A DNA stretch of 64,000 bases from Convolutriloba macropyga (Eukaryota), in NCBI RefSeq assembly GCF_964194025.1, contig NC_134473.1, forward strand, positions 63,674,001-63,738,000, written 5' to 3'. This document shows positions 39,545 to 61,799 of this stretch, piece by piece. The notes beneath the pieces are model-generated. The model saw only the letters and a program-made list of their open reading frames with translations, searched no databases and had not been told where the DNA came from. The first letter of the stretch is position 1; every line of letters begins with the position of its first letter. The translations under genes were made by a program, and so were the position numbers.

Positions 39545-39811
39545 TCATGGTTTGTAGACGTAGGTGAGTCGAGGCATATGCTTCTCCTTCTTCATCTGTT
39601 TCTTCGTCTTGATTTGCAGTTCCTTCTTATTCAGCGCCCTCCTCTTTGCCCTCGTGAGTTTCGGTCTCAAGTCAAGAGGAATAAGCTTCTTGTTCGCATA
39701 TTGTTGTGCAACTGCTCGCTTCTGTTTGTCCGTCATAACTGTCAAAATTCTAGCGATGGACTTGCGCACAGTTTTGATTTTCGCCAACTTGCTTTGCACG
39801 CCTCCAGTAAC
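39545..39811 (-). CDS. RPL35: 60S ribosomal protein L35 (uL29), coding exon 2
   Basis: TTGCAG acceptor; VTGGVQSKLAKIKTVRKSIARILTV...PLDLRPKLTRAKRRAL...KTKKQ matches uL29; TGA at 39547-39545. Confidence 0.95.
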   Translation of the reverse strand, partial: VTGGVQSKLAKIKTVRKSIARILTVMTDKQKRAVAQQYANKKLIPLDLRPKLTRAKRRALNKKELQIKTKKQMKKEKHMPRLTYVYKP

Positions 39812-40486
39812 CTGCAACACTTCTCCGGGTAAATTGTAAGCAATAGCTTAATGAATTCTAATTTTAAACTGGTTTTACCAAAATATTTTGGATGGGAAGT
39901 TTTTTTGAAGGATCTCTTGCATTTGTTTTCCTAAAATGACCTCTGTACCCGTTTCAGATGAAAACTCAAGATATTAACTGTAATCAGTCGTTAAACAACC
40001 TCAAACTTTAACCGGCTTTCACCAATGAATCAAAAAATCTTTTCTGTTTGTACCCCCCCGTACGTTATTCACCCCAGTTACAGAGCACGTGTCATTACAT
40101 AGTAAATCCAATGTCAAAATATAGCACGTGCATCGGGGGTGCAAGTAATATGCACCCACTAAGCGCTGGGGGACGGGGGGCATAACGGAAATATAATCGG
40201 AGGTAGTTATTTTCGAGTTTTTTATTCAAATGACCACACAAGGAAAATCTGGTCATTTCAACAGATGATTTGCATACCGACTGTTATTGTAACTTCCATA
40301 ACAAATTTTAAAAACGCGCGCAAAACAAGATTGATTATGAACTGCAAAATTGAAAGTGCACTTTTGCACGATTTAAACATTAGATGATCCTTATTACATT
40401 CCAAAAATACATTGATGCAAAAAGGCATGATTTATCAATATGCACAATTTGCTGCAAGTATCTTTTTTTTCTTTGCTCTTTCTGAT

Positions 40487-47369: not shown

Positions 47370-47780
47370 GACATATGAAAAACCAAAAACTTTAAAGTTA
47401 AAGCAAATTTAAAAAAACAGCAGGACAAGTCCTGACCTACAATTTGAAGAATTTTCAACGCAGACAAAGAAGAAGCTTTCAAAAATTTTAATTGACTTAA
47501 CCTAAAACCAGACAAATAATAGACTATGGAGGGGATAACTATTGAGAAAACCATTAACATAAAAAAGTAAAAAAAGTCAAATGGCAAAAAATAACAAGCC
47601 AAATTAATTGTGTTAAAACACCGTATTCTCAGTCTACTTTAAAATTAGAGTTGGAGCATTTCACGCCTTATTGGCACTCGCTTTTTCACCCCACTTCCTG
47701 TTTCGGCGTGACCAAAATCATCACCTTAATCTGAATTCAAAAATCATGAAAATGTGTGAACAAATCTTACAAAAAACATA
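47370..47780. repeat. Family C modular repeat, copy 1
   Basis: AGCAGGACAAGTCCTGAC and TTCCTGTTTCGGCGTGACCAAAATCA shared with 51195-52115 and 58170-59715. Confidence 0.75.
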
Positions 47781-48733
47781 GCCGGAAACGCCTCACAAGA
47801 ATAATTTATGAGGCCTTTTTGCAAACAATCACCCTTTGAAATAACTAATGGCCACTAGAAAGCTCAAAAAATTAGGAAAAAGGCCGAAAGTCAAAAATAG
47901 TTGTAGTTGGAAATTAGCCAAAAATATATTTAAAATAAAAAGGTACAAAAGCTCAATTAAACTTTTAGATAATATAAATACAAAAATATTTTTCTTAAAC
48001 AATTGAGAACATTATTAAATTGCTACAGAGATAGGCAAGCTACCCGGCGGTAATATTTCTTAACTTTGAAAAGCGAATTTCTCAACAAAAAATGTGCTTT
48101 AGACCAACAAAATTGTTATTAATTGATAATCAATGACGCCTACAAGCAATTAAAGTAAAAAAAAAACCACACAATAGAAGGCCAAAAATACATGAAATTA
48201 CTTAAAAAACCGCAAAATTGTTAAAGACCTGCAATATAGCAAAGCAGGTTGTTGACCACAATTTTACAAAATGCTATCAACCTATTTAGCAAAAATGGTC
48301 AGTATCAACGAAAAAATGATTGAAAAAGCCGCACGTGAAAAAAAAAGTTTGTTTTTCACACCTCAATTTTTCACACCTCAATTTTTCGCTCTAAAACAAT
48401 GGTATTAAATAATCACTCTTCTCTCAGCTCTTCAGATCTTTTCAGCAGCAAAACCAAATTTTAGCAATGACATTTCCTGTTTCAATTTCACTGCAAAATT
48501 GATTTAAAAAAAGACACTTCTTCAATACTCCAATACTAAGAGAGCATTGAAATAGGGATAATCATAGAAAATTATTCTGTGTTTGACGAGCTTTCCGGTG
48601 ATACCAGTCTTTCCAGGTGTGATAAACCAATCGGACAAAACAAAGCGTTAAGAAGACTGCTGAGGATGTTGTTCTTCCCATGAGAGGGGGTGGGGAACAA
48701 AAGTGAAAATAACGAAAGGAAAAAATAGAGTAC

Positions 48734-48844
48734 CTGGCTAGTGCGGAGCTGTTGCAGCTCCTCTTTAAGAGTGTCTAACTCAGTTTTGAGCTCTGTCTTG
48801 CCCATGCCTCGCATGGCCACTGTTGTCAACTTCTTCTGGGACAT
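48734..48844 (-). CDS. RPL35: 60S ribosomal protein L35, coding exon 1
   Basis: MSQKKLTTVAMRGMGKTELKTELDTLKEELQQLRTSQ followed by CAG|GTACTC donor; phase-0 join to exon 2 gives 125 aa, the expected size for uL29. Confidence 0.9.
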
Positions 48845-48852
48845 CTTAATCA

Positions 48853-48943
48853 CTGCAACGGATCAACACAACCCAAATCTGAAAAAAAACAACACTCACA
48901 CGCATGTTGTATCTATTCTGTTTCGGCCCCAGTGTTTTTTATA
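48853..48943 (-). promoter_or_regulatory. Possible TATA box and short 5'-UTR intron of RPL35
   Basis: TATAAAAA at 48943-48936, GTGAGT donor at 48899, TTGCAG acceptor at 48854-48853, eight bases before the ATG. Confidence 0.35.
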
Positions 48944-49410
48944 CCCCGTCACCAACTGTGTATTGTTATATAACACGTTACTATGTAAAAAATTAGCACG
49001 TGCGTCTGGGGGGGCGTAAAAGATAGAAGCCCACTAAGTAAGCTAGGAGGGAGGGAGGGAGGGAGGGGGGGGGGGGGGGGGACAGAATAGATCCTGCACA
49101 TTTAAAGACTCGATACCCAGAGCTTTGTCTGCTAACGCATTTCGCATTAAGTAGGAAAATAGGGTGAGAACACAAATATGGTATTGATTGTCAGAACTGT
49201 CATTCTGCTTTAGTTATGACAAAATTTTGTTCCATGGCCTCTAAAAGCCATTGTCCGACTTTATTGTCAGCTACCACCTTCCGGCATGCCAAATGTTACA
49301 ATCAACCGATAGCTTCACAATAGTGCTAGCTTACAGATGACATCAATTTTTAAAATTTATATGAAAAAAAATTCAGGAACGAAAAGAAAATAGGCATTAT
49401 CGAGATGAAA

Positions 49411-51084
49411 TCATAAAGTGTTTGGAATGGGATCTTTGTAGTCGCTGTTTTCAACCAGTCTATGCACTGGGGGACTCTTAGGTCTGATTTCTTCAATTCG
49501 GTCACTGCAGCCAGTCAAATGACCATCCGGAATTGATTTACCATCTGGCTCTTTTGAGAACCAACTTGCATATTTCACTGGGTCAAAATTATTTCCAGTA
49601 ATATTTGGACCGATTGTCAACCAGCCTGGTCTAATATCTCTGTCGGAGCCAAATAAATGCAAACGTCTTCTGCCGAGACAAAAGTGCTGGATAATTTTAA
49701 AGATTTCTTCTGGTTTTTCGTGGCTCAAAAATTCTGGCTCTTCTGAAAGAATCAAGTCAAGGTCTGTATTCGCATGAATGAAATCACCATCTTGGTTACG
49801 CTTTACAGTTCCTCGGATGCCAACTAGACAATGCTCTTTTGTCCTGTGAAAGAGGGTTTCAGGTTCGAACCTGCGCGGAGTATCTCGATTTAAAGAATTG
49901 GTTTTAATCCAGCAAATATCTTCACATCGTCGATAATTCCAGCTGTGAATACATTCTCTGCAATCGTCAACGTTTTCAGACGTTCCACACCACATGAAAA
50001 TAAATCCCCGACTTGAAGAAATTGCCTCAATGTCCAAACGCGACAATTCGTCGAAAGTCCACTGCTTTAATTTTGGATCAGAGCTTTCAGGACTATATCC
50101 ATTGACCAAAGGCGCTGAAATCATGATCACATCAAAAACAGATCTCAGTTTTTTCAAATTGAATTTCTCGAAGTCACAGTTCATGTACATTGGCGGCGTG
50201 TTTGTAGAATTGACCAAATCGTCTTTCAAATAAAGAAGCTCCCGCAACTTAGGGTATTCTCTAAACCGATTATCATAACCACTGTCGTGAACAAAGTTCT
50301 GGGGTCTCAAATCAGAATCCACATAATGCTGTGAGTAATCATTCGAAGGTTTCAAAGAAGGGTTAAATTTTCTACGAGGTGATTCATCTTCGTTGTCTGA
50401 GTTCGCCTTTTCTGTTGATACATTCAAATCGTTGCCAGCTTCAGAACCATCGCCACCCTTTTCTGTGACCACACCAGATATTGTGACAAGCTTTTTACCC
50501 TCCGAGTCAAGGCTTGGAAACTTCCACGGATTTGACTGTTCGAGAAACTCGTCAACGACATCACGCACATTTCTCTCCTGTCTAGGAAAAGAAGAATTGC
50601 ACATAGCAACCGCAGTTTCGTATTTATCAACATCGTACTCTTTAGTTAACGCATTTCGCCGCACAGCGGAGCGTCTTTTGAGTTCGCTTAAAAAGTCTGG
50701 GATGTCCAGAATCAACGGATCATCAGGACCCCCAGTATCGGAGGCGTATTTGGGAACCACATTCACATCAATAACTCGTTCACGCCTTTCATATCTGTGA
50801 CCTGTCGGTGATCTCGACCGACTTCTGTTGTACCTTCTTCTAGGGTCGTAACCTCCCCTATCACCCCCATGAAATCGACCTCTGAACCCACCACCAAATC
50901 TACCTCCTCTCGGATAGTATGGTCTGCTGCCTCTATACCCCCATCCGTAAGGTCGAGGTGCGTAAGGACGAAATCGTTCTCGATTGTGGTAATGATGATA
51001 ATCTCTATCGGGAGGTCCATCATATCTGGGTTTGGAGAAATGTTCACGTCGCGAGTCATCATCTCTCTCATTAAACTCTGGCAT
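49411..51084 (-). CDS. METTL14: m6A methyltransferase non-catalytic subunit METTL14 (MT-A70 family), single coding exon
   Basis: Diagnostic motifs NDYSQHYVD..RPQNF, YPKLRELL..KD, RRCEDICWIKTN, TKEHCLVGIRGTVKR..DGDFIHAN, HFCLGRRRLHLFG, RPKSPP. First ATG at 51084; the track start at 51126 is TTG. Confidence 0.96.
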   Translation of the reverse strand: MPEFNERDDDSRREHFSKPRYDGPPDRDYHHYHNRERFRPYAPRPYGWGYRGSRPYYPRGGRFGGGFRGRFHGGDRGGYDPRRRYNRSRSRSPTGHRYERRERVIDVNVVPKYASDTGGPDDPLILDIPDFLSELKRRSAVRRNALTKEYDVDKYETAVAMCNSSFPRQERNVRDVVDEFLEQSNPWKFPSLDSEGKKLVTISGVVTEKGGDGSEAGNDLNVSTEKANSDNEDESPRRKFNPSLKPSNDYSQHYVDSDLRPQNFVHDSGYDNRFREYPKLRELLYLKDDLVNSTNTPPMYMNCDFEKFNLKKLRSVFDVIMISAPLVNGYSPESSDPKLKQWTFDELSRLDIEAISSSRGFIFMWCGTSENVDDCRECIHSWNYRRCEDICWIKTNSLNRDTPRRFEPETLFHRTKEHCLVGIRGTVKRNQDGDFIHANTDLDLILSEEPEFLSHEKPEEIFKIIQHFCLGRRRLHLFGSDRDIRPGWLTIGPNITGNNFDPVKYASWFSKEPDGKSIPDGHLTGCSDRIEEIRPKSPPVHRLVENSDYKDPIPNTL

Positions 51085-51194
51085 AACTACTTCTAATTCA
51101 TATAGAACTGAAATATCAAAAATCAACTGGTTTAAGGGCTAAATGTAAATTAATCAATGCCCATAGTGAATAGTTTCAACATTGTTTGTTTAAT

Positions 51195-52115
51195 TCATTA
51201 AACATAGCTGGCAGATTGCCAGAAAATAGCCGCAATAGATTCGTAGATCGGCAGTCTAAAAAACAGTAAAAAAGACAGACCAAAAAAATTAGTCTTTTCA
51301 TTGAAGGCTGATCTGTTATATATTTTGATTAAAAATCTGTATAAGTTATTGCTGCCTCTATTAGCTGATCTCAAATAACCTTCACTTAGAGTGACACACA
51401 CGCATTTGACCTTATCTCTTTGAATTAAAGTAAATAAAAGTCAATTTCAAAGTGAGGAAGTCATTTTTGAGAGTGAGGTAAGTCAAGTATGACCAAAAAT
51501 TTAATCATGCGCATGAACAAAAAACTCGCTCCACTAAGAGCGAAAAATGACGTCACACATGAAATTCAGTTGAAATTGCATGAACGAATGAACAAAAAGT
51601 GGCTTTGACGTCATATGGTCGTAACAAAAATCATGACGAAATAAAAAAAACATAGCAGGGCAAGTCCTGACGTACAATTCAAAGAATTTTCATTGACTAA
51701 ACAGAAAACTAGACCTAGAACGGAATATGAATGGATTGGGAAAACCATTTAGAAAAAAATCCGATCCAAAAAATCGAAAAAACAGTTAAAATCAGAGTGA
51801 AATTGCCGCATGTGAACAAAAAACCACTACCGAGAAACCGAAATTTTGTTCAAACACCGTTTTCTCACTCCACTTTAAAATTATAGCGAAAAAAATTCAC
51901 GCCACAAAACCACTCGCTTTTTCGCTCCATTTCCTGTTTCGGCGTGACCAAAATCACTAGTCCAATTTGACTTCAAAAATCATGAAAATGTGTGAACAGA
52001 TCCTAAGAAAAGACAGCGCCCCAATACAATTCAAATTCTTTGAATTGTAAAAACCAAGAGAAGGCCAATAATAGCCCCAGCTATCGCTGTGCGGCTATTA
52101 AAAAAAATACTAGCC
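51195..52115. repeat. Family C modular repeat, copy 2, directly upstream of METTL14
   Basis: Blocks homologous to 58170-59715; TGACGTCA at 51548 and 51606. Confidence 0.8.
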
Positions 52116-52463
52116 ATTTTTAAAGAGCTTGCCAATTCAAGTAATCTGGCATTGAAAACTTTTCCTTTTCTATGTTCTCTAGGACTGACTTTACTTAGGA
52201 TGAAATTAGAAATGAAGGCGTAGAGTAAAATTTTTACTGTCATAAAAAAATTTTTCTGACCTAATATTTCAGAAAAGCTGATTTTGAGTAAACCAGTTTT
52301 CAATTAGTTAAAAAGATGTTACACTTTTCTGGTTTTTTATAGATTAATTTTTTGCTGCGACATATCAGAATGGTCAACCAGCCAAATAGTGTTCTCCCAC
52401 AGTACTAAAAATAGTGATGATGACAATACGCCACATAACAGCTGAAGTGCGGCATCAACAAAA

Positions 52464-52464
<1 letters not shown>

Positions 52465-52496
<32 letters not shown>

Positions 52497-52535
52497 AAGA
52501 GATGGAATGAGAGTGAGAGAGAGTGAAAGAGATAG
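52465..52535. repeat. (GATA)n(GA)n microsatellite
   Basis: Seen directly. Confidence 0.9.
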
Positions 52536-53069
52536 AACGTGAACGAGAAAGGAGAAACCCTAACCGACAGAAAGAAAAAGATAGCAACATTTTCCATGGT
52601 GGGATTCGACTCTGTTTTCTAGCCTTGTCAGTAAATAAATCATAGAAAAAAGCTGAGAAAGGCAAAATTACAAACAAGTTTTCAATTTCACAGTAAAAAA
52701 AGTTCAAAGCCATGTTTTGTCTCAAAAGTTCTGTCAAGTAACCCATGTCCAAGACATAAAAAGATTCGTTGGTCAGTAAGGGTAGTTAAGCTCAAAAAAC
52801 TATAAAAAATATTTAAAAATTTTGGAAACAATTCCAAATTTTAACAAATTTTGCTTAAATTCAAGACATTAATATTCTAACTATTCATTGTCTCAAGAGA
52901 CTATCCAGTATACCTGTTTCAAACATAAAAAAGTTTCACTGGCTCACAAAGATCCATACACTTGGAACATGAAAAATTTCCCAAAAATTTGAGAAAAAAC
53001 TTAAATTTGATCCAAAAATTACTGAGATCGGAGTAATAAAAAACATTGATCATCATTCTATTAACTCTA

Positions 53070-55919: not shown

Positions 55920-56268
55920 TTAAACGTTCGAACAAGACCCAACTGCAAAGTCATACAAATGCTCATTGAAGTCAAACTGTATTTGCTTCGCACACTTGGC
56001 TACAAATTCATACTTGGCAATGCACATGTATTTTGGCTGATCCAGCATTTCAGCGCCATGACGCACCAGATAATTTTTTGAGACCAAAGAAGATATCTGT
56101 GCAAATAAATTAGCAAGCACGCATCTTTCGGGCTCTTCGTGAATTGCGTAGAAAATTGCAAGAAGTCGTTCAAGGACAAATGCCTTTGGTCCCATAACGT
56201 GGTTCAGTTTGTTCACATTGACCTTGGCATTTGTCGGCTTCTTACTCATTCGTTGTTTCACGAAGAAC
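55920..56268 (-). CDS. ORC5: Origin recognition complex subunit 5, last exon
   Basis: TTTAG acceptor; FFVK...NHVMGPKAFVLERLLAIF...NLFAQISSLV...LDQPKYMC...HLYDF matches the ORC5 C-terminal domain; TAA at 55922-55920. Confidence 0.93.
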
Positions 56269-58169
56269 CTAAACAAAGAGATTAGGGACCATTTTGACTT
56301 TCTGTATAATTCATGATAGTCCGCAGAATAACTGCTATACGTTTTTAGCTGTACAGTTTTTTGTAGCGTCTGAAAGCATGCCACAGTGATCACATAATCT
56401 CCCTCCAAAAATTCTTTTAAAAAGCTATTGTCACATTAAAAAGAACTCATTCCCAATGAAACTTTAAAGCTGACATATTGATTCATTTTAAATCAATTAC
56501 TTCTGTTCGAAAACAGATAATTCGACGACCGACTAATGAAATTTTCTCCAGCTATAAAAATCCCGAAAATAATAAATCCGCCTCTTTGAGTCGTAAAAAA
56601 CAACCGTCCACTAATGCTTCTCTCTCAGTTCTGAATGGCAAAACATAGCCCAGGGAAATCCCGAAATGAACCAAAAGGTGGTCGTCATCAACAAACACCT
56701 TCTCGAGCCTTACTGCGTCACGGTGCCTCTCTTAGAAGTTACCAAAGATTAGCACGTTCTCATCGCCACATGTGGAGGAAGCTAAGGAACATTAAAGGAG
56801 ACATTAACCAATCAGAATTGAGGACGGACGTGATATTTGGTTCGGTTGTAATAGATTCATATCAAGTCTCCTAGGCCACTGAGGCATGGCCAAATGGGTT
56901 AATCGAGTTACATAATTGTGCGTCCCACTTATGTTTGCATACAGCAATTATCTCAGGTAATTCTGCTATTAAGCGAAATTTTTGACTTTTTAAAACCAAA
57001 CGTTCAATTTGGATTCAATCGGGATTCAATTTTTAGAAAAACAATTTCACAAAAGTTCAGTAGCGTGTGAAAGCATACCCCTGTGATCCAATAAATTTTA
57101 TCGTCTAACAAAATTTTAACCAATTATTGTGGCAGATAACATTAGCATTTTTTTCTCGGCAAATATCTCAAACAATATGCAGGGGAAGAATTAGTTCGGT
57201 GTAGGTAAAATGGGGTTAGTTGGTGAGTTGCTGCGTAAGAGTACGTGAACGTGGGTTGAAAATGTAATAAAAAAACCCAAAACGTTGCAAAAACAATTTA
57301 AAAGACCGACACAAGCAAACTCCTGATTAAAAAAAGCGTCTTTTGACAGCAACTAACAAAACAAAAGCTTCCACAGAGAGAATTTTTTCATTAGGTCCAT
57401 TGAATCTGCACAAAGTATCACACTAAAAATTACTACTCATGTCAACAAGCAGTAGAAACAAAATCACTGCCGTTTCTTTTGTCCGCCAAAATTGTTCAAA
57501 AAACACATCAATTTTTCCTAGCCTGAAAAATTTCTTTCAAACTTTGCAACAAATGAATTAAAATTCGGAAAACGAGTCAATCGTTCCTGCAAAAAATTCT
57601 ACAACCGATAATCCTCTTAACATCTCAAATAAAAACATAGTCGGCCAATCTCCAGACAATAGCTGCGATAACGTCCTACGCCGTCATTCCCACAACAAAC
57701 CGAAAACATACCGGGCAGATTGCCGGAAAAAAGCCACTATTGATTCCCATAACCAAGATAAGGATTGAAAGAAGAGAAAAAACTAATCAAAAAATGATTA
57801 TTGTACAAACAATTTTAAGTGCGAACTAGTTTGATGTCATTTTGGAGCTGAACATACTTCGGTTTCATAAGAGAACGACATAGGAGCTAGAATCAAAACC
57901 AATAAGCATTAGGGATGGTAACTAAGAACAAAGTTTGAGTAACGGGCATCAAAAATTGGGCTTTATGGGTTTATCCCGTTTCTATTTCTGACTTCAATTT
58001 TTACACTGACTCTGTTCATTTTGAATTGCTTTGCTGAGCAATTGATGCTCAAAATCACTTTTAGCAGAATGAGAGAAGAGGGAAACTAGCCTAGAGAAGT
58101 AAAAAAGATTTCACGCAAAATGTTGAAAAAGCGGCAAAATGAGGTAAAGCGAAACATTTTTTTGTTCGA

Positions 58170-59715: not shown

Positions 59716-60178
59716 TTATTTTTCTACAAATTGTAGTGGATCCAAAACAGGTAATTCAAAGATCGACTAATAAACTTTCTCCAGCTAAAAAAAATCGAGA
59801 AAATAAAGACGCCTCTTTGAGTCGTAAAGACCAACTCTTTGAGTCGTATAAACCAACCTTTCTAGTCGTAAAAAAAGTCACAATACCAGATTTTGACTTG
59901 CACGAACATTCGGCAATTTCAAACTTGTAAATTTGTTTCGAGCAAGGTTAGATCTCTGCAGAAGCACTTCCAACTTCTGGGCTGCAATTCTCGAGGCGCT
60001 ACGCGGTGCTAAACAAACGTCAGACATTATCGGTGACTTAAAGCAGAGTCACCTAGCATATACTTTAAGGTACTGATATAGATTTTATATATTGATATAG
60101 TTAGCGAAAAATGTCAAAGGGACTTGAAAAAGTTTCCTGTTTTGACCTTCTACATTAAGACTGTTTTGGCAATGTTAC

Positions 60179-60719
60179 CTTGTGTCACTGGTAGGCGGAT
60201 TGTAGCTGGCCAAGTAAGCAGCCACAATGATGAAATTACTGTCGTATGGAAGAGTGTCCTCTGCCACTCGGTCACGCGGGTACGGATCCAGACAAGCCAA
60301 TGTGGATCCTCCAGTTGAATCAGAACCGGCTTTCGTTATCACAACCGGTTCAAAAAGAGTCCAAAGTCGTCTTAGGTCCCGAATTCCGCATAAACCGTCA
60401 TTGAGTGGTCGGAGAAACGTACTCAAATGCTTATGAATCAACTTTCGCATCAGGAAAAGATCAGGATTGTACAAATATACGAGCCCAACCATTGATTTAA
60501 TGTAAAAGCTTAACACAGTGCTGTCAACATCGTTGTGGATAAGGTCTCTCGATATTATTTCCACACATTCGTCCTGTGTGTACATGTCTAAATGAATATG
60601 AACGGGAAGCGTCTGGGAGGGTTGAAGGAAATAGTCGGGCTGACATCGACTCACAATAACGATTGATACCTTCTGATTAGTTAGCTCCGGTAGTGAGAGA
60701 AGCTGTGACGACTTTTCAT
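60179..60719 (-). CDS. ORC5: ORC5, penultimate exon; earlier exons not found in the window
   Basis: TTGCAG acceptor at 60721-60720; LLSLPELTNQKVSIVIVS...LPYDSNFIIVAAYLASYNP..D.R; AG|GTAACA donor; the split Arg codon AG+G joins in frame to the last exon. Confidence 0.92.
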
Positions 60720-61799
60720 CTGCAATTTATTAAGGTTTCTCTCATGTTCAATAAGCAAATTGTTCCACGATCACTTGTTCAGAGTAAGTTTACTCAAAAT
60801 ACACAAGTATAAAAAATTGCGTCCTTTTTCTAGCGATCGTTCTATGCGTATGCGGACCATTTATGGCAAAAAGGACAACCTAGTGGCAAAAACATTGATT
60901 ATTTTAGTGTCGGGACAATTTACCCAATGCCATCATACCCAACTTGCGATTTTACCACATGCAATTTTACTCAATGCCAAAATACCCTAAATACCCTAAG
61001 TATCCATCCCATAACTAATAAAATCTGAATATTTAGATACCCGTCAACAATAAAAAAATATTAAGAAATCACTTGGTTTAAACAGACGCAAAATTACCAA
61101 AATGTATTAATTGAACAGCATTTGATCAAAATAAATTTGAGGCATCATTTTGAGCAACATTTTGACAAAAAACTTAACCCATAAAATTAGTGATTTTAAT
61201 TGCGGTACGTCAAGAAAAATAGATTGACTTTGATCATTGACGGCAATGATTTCCACAAGGAATTAGAAACGAAAACAACGCATTGGAACTGTTCAAAATG
61301 GAACTCACACACATTCAAATTGACTGCCATTATTGCAAACGAACAATTATCAACCACGAAAAAAAAAGAACATAACCATGAAATTATTCGAGAGCATGGT
61401 AATACATCGAATAAAAATTAATTTCACAAAAAACAAATTACAAACGAAAAATGGCTAAAAACGGTTATCTATATGCGCCATTCTGTCAAAAAAACTTTTC
61501 AAAGTGAAACTCATTCACTTAACGCAGCGCATATCAAACTCCGGCTCAGAAAAAAATAGTTTACACGGCAACTTTACTAACTTTCTCTTTTAGGTCACAA
61601 CGCCATCTGAACGAACAGTACTTTCGGTAACAAGAAACCTCAAGAAAACCAATACTCCTCTTCGGGTCGTAAAAAAACCAAGAGAAGGTCAATAATAGCC
61701 CCAGCAATCACTGTGCGGCTATTAACAAGAACATAGTACTATGATGGTTTACGTCGATGTACTGTATGACCATGCTACTGTAAAAATCTATAGTATTTA

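Follow-up and report, generated by a model that had tools for sequence, protein, structure and literature searches.

The locus lies in a 64,000-nucleotide stretch of the genome of the acoel worm Convolutriloba macropyga (contig NC_134473.1, positions 63,674,001 to 63,738,000), hereafter the window, and is occupied on the minus strand by an orthologue of METTL14 (Table 1). Both the list of open reading frames (ORFs) and the translation show this frame to be uninterrupted over 557 codons from the ATG at 51084, with an in-frame stop codon 17 codons further upstream. The only Pfam domain in the ORF is MT-A70 (PF05063; residues 317-493, E = 2.6e-48), which scores 164.7 bits against a family cut-off of 23.9 bits. 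The top PDB match by phmmer is human METTL14 (E = 8e-116, query residues 132-540 against human residues 5-402), and METTL3 gives a weaker match (E = 1.6e-27). All named full-length matches are METTL14 proteins. Over nearly its whole length the protein resembles METTL14 more closely than METTL3 or METTL4, and in the phylogenetic tree it nests within animal METTL14. Judged from its sequence, this ORF is a genuine METTL14, the non-catalytic RNA-binding partner of METTL3 in the m6A writer.

The MT-A70 core is 53-56% identical to that of canonical animal METTL14 (human; PDB 6ttp_B and 5il0_B), with which the acoel protein also shares the first helix, an RPKSPP motif containing the equivalent of S399, a degenerate catalytic motif and the presence of a METTL3 partner gene. 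In an AlphaFold2 model built with a 57-sequence alignment, pLDDT mostly exceeds 85 over core residues 246-540, and a helix is predicted at residues 128-149 with pLDDT values of 81-89. This helix contains the DFLSELKRRS segment and is the counterpart of the canonical METTL14 first helix, the PDB alignment opening at query residue 132 opposite human residue 5. The catalytic motif reads SAPL where EPPL is canonical (SPPL in one orthologue) and, in the alignment to 6ttp_B, the equivalents of human R245, R254, R255, K297, R298 and S399 are retained whilst R249 is replaced by His. The protein therefore combines a degenerate catalytic motif with retained basic residues of the RNA groove. Beyond SAPL and the R249 substitution, it differs from canonical animal METTL14 in an N-terminal extension of ~128 residues that is disordered and rich in Arg, Gly and Tyr, in the absence of C-terminal RGG repeats, in a conserved (D/E)YKDPIPNT C-terminus, in its single exon and in its long stem branch in the tree.

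Table 1. Features of the METTL14 locus in window coordinates, with the evidence on which each was delimited
Feature	Position	Strand	Evidence
METTL14 orthologue, complete single-exon CDS, 557 aa plus stop	49411..51084	-	ORF list and translation, Pfam, PDB
N-terminal extension, residues 1-128, not in canonical animal METTL14, predicted disordered	50701..51084	-	Alignment, AlphaFold2
Extension core rich in Arg, Gly, Tyr and Phe (residues 47-93): RG, RGG, RG, RGG six residues apart, R-x(2-5)-PY, basic run, RS repeat	50806..50946	-	Composition, motif scan
RSRSRSP, residues 87-93; RSRS(R/K)SP in 4/4 species	50806..50826	-	Alignment, motif scan
Equivalent of the canonical METTL14 first helix, residues 128-149	50638..50703	-	PDB alignment, AlphaFold2
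Conserved METTL14 core including the MT-A70 fold, residues 246-540	49465..50349	-	Alignment to 6ttp_B, orthologue alignments, AlphaFold2
Short C-terminal tail, residues 541-557, in place of RGG repeats	49414..49464	-	Alignment, pN, no RG
AATAAA, candidate polyadenylation signal, 146 nt past the stop codon	49260..49265	-	Consensus match only

The genome contains a single METTL14 locus. Its only other MT-A70 locus is an orthologue of METTL3 that is divided into several exons, lacks an RG-rich C-terminus and lies on a different chromosome from METTL14 (G000:C16:40139257-40140512; L008 7257-8512, minus strand). WTAP-like (C10 and C1) and VIRMA-like (C5) genes are also present, together with two YTH loci (C2 and C15), and the m6A pathway of C. 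macropyga otherwise appears complete from its gene content. The gene order ORC5-METTL14-RPL35, with all three genes on one strand, is the same in the window and in the acoel Symsagittifera roscoffensis. In the window, the ORC5-like exons upstream of METTL14 are located at 55923-56270 and 60178-60720 (minus strand), and the RPL35 (Ribosomal_L29) exons downstream at 48731-48853 and 39548-39814 (minus strand). The latter are separated by an intron of ~8.9 kb, and RPL35 of S. roscoffensis is called as one exon of 125 amino acids. The window also contains very high-copy repeats at 51180-52100, 47684-47867 and 48788-49155, in which word depth in DNA contig sets reaches 10^4 to 4x10^6 compared with ~40-60 for unique DNA. 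One of these repeats opens ~100 bp ahead of the METTL14 ATG. At ~49040-49090 there is a poly-C/CCCT tract, and a microsatellite-like (GA)n/(GAGA) tract at 52440-52560, upstream of the repeat block.

Single-exon orthologues of this METTL14 were identified in S. roscoffensis (L004) and in two ENA assemblies (L006 and L007), which with the window makes four genomes. The closest named protein is the METTL14-like protein of S. roscoffensis, with 73% identity in a full-length BLASTP match and 78% identity when aligned by MAFFT. Together with the shared gene order, this marks the window as DNA of an acoel related to Symsagittifera. All four orthologues have the start MP(E/D), the extension and the new tail in common, and in each of them a stop codon lies in frame 6-17 codons upstream of the conserved start. 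The public gene call in L007 begins at an internal Met, and the open frame runs upstream from there to the conserved start. Within the extension, pS is saturated at 0.70-0.77, both between the window and S. roscoffensis and between the two ENA species, which implies that C. macropyga and S. roscoffensis are not very closely related. The corresponding pN values are 0.26 and 0.11 for the whole extension, and 0.13 and 0.10 for its Arg/Gly core. This combination of saturated pS and slow protein change identifies the extension as coding. The substitution pattern further indicates that the extension is under purifying selection and that its architecture is conserved in four related species. Five of the six variants found within the METTL14 coding sequence among sequenced individuals are synonymous.

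These comparisons bear directly on the possibility that the unusual architecture is an artefact of the gene model, the extension being 5' UTR or intron ahead of a later start codon, or the entire locus a retro-pseudogene. The human METTL14 gene has many exons, and the intron-less state of the C. macropyga gene would fit such an origin. However, the WTAP-like and YTH genes of the same genome also have large single exons, which makes the lack of introns weak evidence of retroposition. The frame stays open across synonymous saturation in four species with an extension pN far below pS, the start codon is conserved with stops upstream of it, and the gene is the sole METTL14 copy and lies in conserved synteny. 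In addition, the next Met of C. macropyga METTL14 after residue 1 comes only at residue ~163, so that initiation at a later AUG would miss the conserved first helix. An artefact of this kind is consequently hardly credible, and sole copy, synteny and constraint together speak against a retro-pseudogene, an idea that was rejected. Four sequencing runs of one study gave genomic-DNA-like coverage over 47500-53000, with even depth across intergenic DNA and no splice-like joints in METTL14. A search for transcript-derived protein fragments over METTL14 residues 1-200 found none. In the window (51085-51100, TTAG) and in L006 (230-244) and L007 (5710-5724; both TTCAG), the conserved ATG is preceded at a distance of 4-9 nt by a pyrimidine-rich stretch with a terminal AG, which was not seen in S. 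roscoffensis. On its sequence pattern, this stretch could be a candidate 3' splice or trans-splice acceptor of an intron in the 5' UTR.

Relative to human METTL14, the PDB alignment leaves ~127-128 additional residues at the N-terminus. This agrees with the preliminary description, which had placed an Arg/Gly-rich extension ahead of the first helix: residues 1-125 (50710-51084) contain both the stretch that it quoted and RSRSRSP. Arg, Gly, Tyr and Pro abound in the extension, which carries two RGG and two further RG units followed by RSRSRSP. Residues 40-95 consist of 25% Arg, 25% Gly, 12% Tyr and 12% Pro, with a net charge of +12, and pLDDT below 50 over residues 1-104 of the AlphaFold2 model predicts disorder. 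The blocks conserved in the alignment are the RG-x-Y/F units, RSRS(R/K)SP and an RRE(R/K)-x-(V/I)D...VP-x-Y-x-SD-x-G run that leads into the helix. Each of the four extensions contains R-x(2-5)-PY matches, which the scanned canonical METTL14 proteins all lack, but the positions of these matches are not conserved between the two species pairs. No paralogue of the extension was found in its own genome at E <= 0.01, and a search of the ESM Atlas provided no usable look-alike.

In the motif classes of Thandapani et al. (2013; cited in PMC5855951), RGG/RG motifs are grouped as tri-RGG, di-RGG, tri-RG and di-RG. The spacers in these classes reportedly measure 0-4 residues. A motif scan places the RG and RGG units of the C. 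macropyga extension six residues apart, and under the 0-4 residue rule they fit none of the di/tri-RGG or di/tri-RG classes. The extension of S. roscoffensis has one tri-RG match, the two ENA orthologues have four overlapping tri-RG matches each, and the tails of vertebrate and Nematostella METTL14 belong to the tri-RGG class. By motif count and spacing, the extension falls short of the canonical tail as an RG region: the C. macropyga copy has two RGG and two RG units, vertebrate METTL14 tails six or seven RGG. Thus, the RGG region that had been proposed for the N-terminus does exist as an Arg/Gly-rich region, although the C. macropyga copy does not have the spacing that defines RGG/RG motifs. 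In common with the RGG/RG regions of FUS and hnRNP proteins, the extension is disordered, rich in Arg, Gly and aromatic residues and net positive, and its ENA orthologues are tri-RG. It differs from those regions in the six-residue spacing of the C. macropyga RG units, which belong to no class, and in having no RRM or other RNA-binding domain alongside.

The RSRSRSP element had been likened to SR-type splicing factors and had suggested a link between methylation and splicing. SR proteins combine one or more RRMs with a long RS-rich domain, whereas Pfam finds no RRM in this protein and the motif scan confines its RS repeat to RSRSRS (residues 87-92). The three dipeptides do not constitute an SR-type RS domain, and nothing in the analysis ties them to splicing. 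A reading in which the RS element and the RG region recruit the m6A writer to the splicing machinery, in the manner of SR and hnRNP proteins, can draw on the conservation of RSRSRSP and on the existence of RS-rich METTL14 relatives, namely plant MTB with 10-35 RS/SR dipeptides. Despite this, it is considered quite improbable, as three RS dipeptides fall far short of the length of an RS domain and the protein has neither an RRM nor any domain beyond MT-A70.

At the other end of the protein, RPKSPP occupies residues 534-539 and is followed by exactly 18 residues, free of RG dipeptides, and then the stop codon. This agrees with the preliminary description, in which the protein stops 18 residues after this motif without RGG. 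The C-terminal RGG repeats that are usual in most animal METTL14 proteins are thus absent and a short tail is found instead, whose ending, (D/E)YKDPIPNT(L/I), is conserved across the four acoel-type METTL14 sequences and occurs nowhere else in the alignments. The pN of this tail is 0.12 between the window and S. roscoffensis and 0.02 between the two ENA species, and its ending may represent a putative short linear docking motif. An alternative 3' exon, which had been raised beforehand as a possible source of a C-terminal RGG tail, was sought across the window, and a six-frame scan of its whole length revealed no further open stretch rich in RG on this strand, the minus strand. As RPL35 moreover starts ~560 bp downstream, such an exon is unlikely. 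C-terminal RGG repeats are also missing in flatworms, Oscarella and plants, from which it follows that the RGG tail does not define the METTL14 family.

In the tree, the four acoel-type sequences form a clade (support 100/99) within animal METTL14, on a stem of 0.84 changes per site. The extension and tail most likely originated once, as a package, in the ancestor shared by all four, which is also the parsimonious interpretation. Among animals, the comparison covered the 116 non-acoel proteins found among the best 120 METTL14 matches, nearly all of them from animals and ranging from cnidarians to vertebrates. None of these 116 proteins has an N-terminal RG cluster: N-terminal RGG is zero except for one protein with a single copy, and N-terminal RG never exceeds one. 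In most of them, the tail contains 3-12 RG. The tail has also been lost repeatedly with nothing gained in its stead, in Macrostomum, the trematodes Paragonimus and Opisthorchis, the cestode Echinococcus, the sponge Oscarella and the acanthocephalan Pomphorhynchus. These animals resemble acoels in lacking a C-terminal RG tail, but have only 0-2 RG at the N-terminus, and among them and the acoels an RG-rich N-terminus was gained in the acoel clade only. A further well-supported METTL14 clade without an RG tail is represented by P0053, P0077, P0078, P0092, P0095, P0116, P0117 and P0120 (from ENA, Logan and JGI). Its members end in a conserved C-terminus of the M(L/I)(Y/F)(R/K)KRF type, another lineage-specific replacement of the RGG tail.

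Beyond animals, an exhaustive search of 50%-identity representatives identified many METTL14-type proteins with an RG/RS-rich N-terminal extension and a C-terminus that is not RG-rich. These include MTB, the streptophyte METTL14 orthologue also named 'methyltransferase-like protein 1', of Adiantum, Juncus, Zostera, Amborella, Impatiens, Zingiber, Victoria and Hibiscus, a set that besides Amborella covers a fern, monocots, a water lily and eudicots. The same layout is found in the charophytes Chlorokybus and Spirogloea and in the diplonemid Namystynia, whereas METTL14 of Paulinella has an RG-rich N-terminus yet also keeps C-terminal RG/RGG repeats. Acoel METTL14 is therefore similar to plant MTB in layout, with an RG/RS region at the N-terminus and no RG-rich C-terminus. 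However, MTB extensions comprise 460-930 residues, compared with ~128 in the acoel, and contain many more RS and RG together with Pro/Gly/Met-rich tracts, the RS/SR dipeptides in their N-terminal regions numbering 10-35. As the acoel clade is nested in animal METTL14, this likeness is convergent rather than inherited, and the tree does not place acoel METTL14 in the MTB lineage despite its MTB-like layout. The suggestion that an N-terminal RGG region might already be widespread among orthologues thus holds for plant MTB, where it is the rule, and for some protists, but not for the other animals sampled. Across the proteins surveyed, the N-terminal RG layout is new for animals and not for the METTL14 family. 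Literature searches returned no paper that treats METTL14 of acoels or that comments on the RGG/RG region at the N-terminus of plant MTB.

In human METTL14, the C-terminal RGG repeats make contact with substrate RNA and their deletion abolishes activity because RNA binding is lost; the protein has no functional nuclear localisation signal (NLS) of its own (PMC5855951). With this in mind, we consider with moderate confidence that acoel METTL14 lost its RGG tail and gained the N-terminal extension as a counterpart RNA-contact arm. In this scenario, the ancestral C-terminal RGG tail would have been lost in the acoel lineage, leaving the short conserved (D/E)YKDPIPNT tail, and a disordered Arg/Gly/Tyr/Pro-rich extension of ~100-128 residues bearing RSRS(R/K)SP would have been gained before the canonical first helix. 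As a flexible arm rich in basic and aromatic residues, the extension would supplement the METTL3-METTL14 groove with unspecific affinity for RNA, and it would be a likely substrate of arginine methylation. The RNA-contact arm would then be tethered from the opposite end of the same fold, in parallel to plant MTB. The proposal that the acoel protein is a rewired writer, in which a lost module has been replaced at the other end, is consistent with the orthology, the absence of the tail and the conserved N-terminal extension, although its notions of a module that 'moved' and of an SR link are not supported.

Taken literally, movement would mean that the sequence coding for the ancestral C-terminal RGG repeats had reached the 5' end of METTL14 by transposition or duplication. 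Both regions are Arg/Gly-rich, and gain and loss fall on the same long stem branch. Against this, no similarity could be detected between the two low-complexity regions, the second phmmer domain scoring -13 bits, and the extension is rich in Tyr, Pro and Phe at a spacing of six residues, in contrast to the dense RGG of canonical tails. The genome contains no paralogous segment, and low-complexity regions arise easily de novo. Relocation is for these reasons regarded as very improbable. The lack of similarity to canonical tails, coupled with the lack of a genomic paralogue, makes loss plus independent gain the simpler account, and on these comparisons loss of the RGG tail with independent de novo gain at the N-terminus appears likelier than relocation.

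That some animal lineages lost the RG tail without any RG gain means that replacement is not obligatory, and the acoel extension may serve another role. It could be mainly a localisation or regulatory module that confers its own nuclear import, or targeting to speckles or condensates, through the PY-like motif and a phosphorylatable RSRS(R/K)SP, where human METTL14 instead rides on METTL3. This reading is possible, if rather unlikely. In its favour are the R-x(2-5)-PY matches in all four extensions and their absence from the canonical METTL14 proteins scanned, the conservation of RSRS(R/K)SP and the lack of a functional NLS in human METTL14 (PMC5855951), and the several animal lineages without any RG region indicate that replacement of the RNA contact was not compulsory. 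On the other hand, PY matches are expected from an Arg/Pro/Tyr-rich composition and differ in position between the species pairs, and a localisation role is itself compatible with RNA binding by the extension. An improbable, more far-reaching version holds that acoel METTL14 is autonomous, the extension combining RNA binding, PY-type import and an RS phospho-switch in one module that would allow METTL3-independent nuclear entry and contact with RNA or splicing factors, and (D/E)YKDPIPNT docking a lineage-specific partner. If this is true, an early-branching bilaterian lineage would have a rewired m6A writer.

The acoel METTL14 layout is a modest lineage-specific variant, common to related acoels and plant-like, and constitutes an incremental point on one protein in a little-studied clade that reveals no new mechanism. 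Acoel METTL14 nevertheless provides a natural test of whether a disordered RGG module is independent of its position, as it keeps the fold, lacks the tail and bears an Arg/Gly-rich region at the opposite end. Taken together with plant MTB and the animals that lack RG altogether, it presents the charged disordered appendage of METTL14 as evolutionarily mobile and, in places, dispensable. Such comparisons are useful for the design of minimal m6A writers and for the reading of RGG-directed regulation, including methylation by PRMT1 and PRMT5 and binding of SMN.
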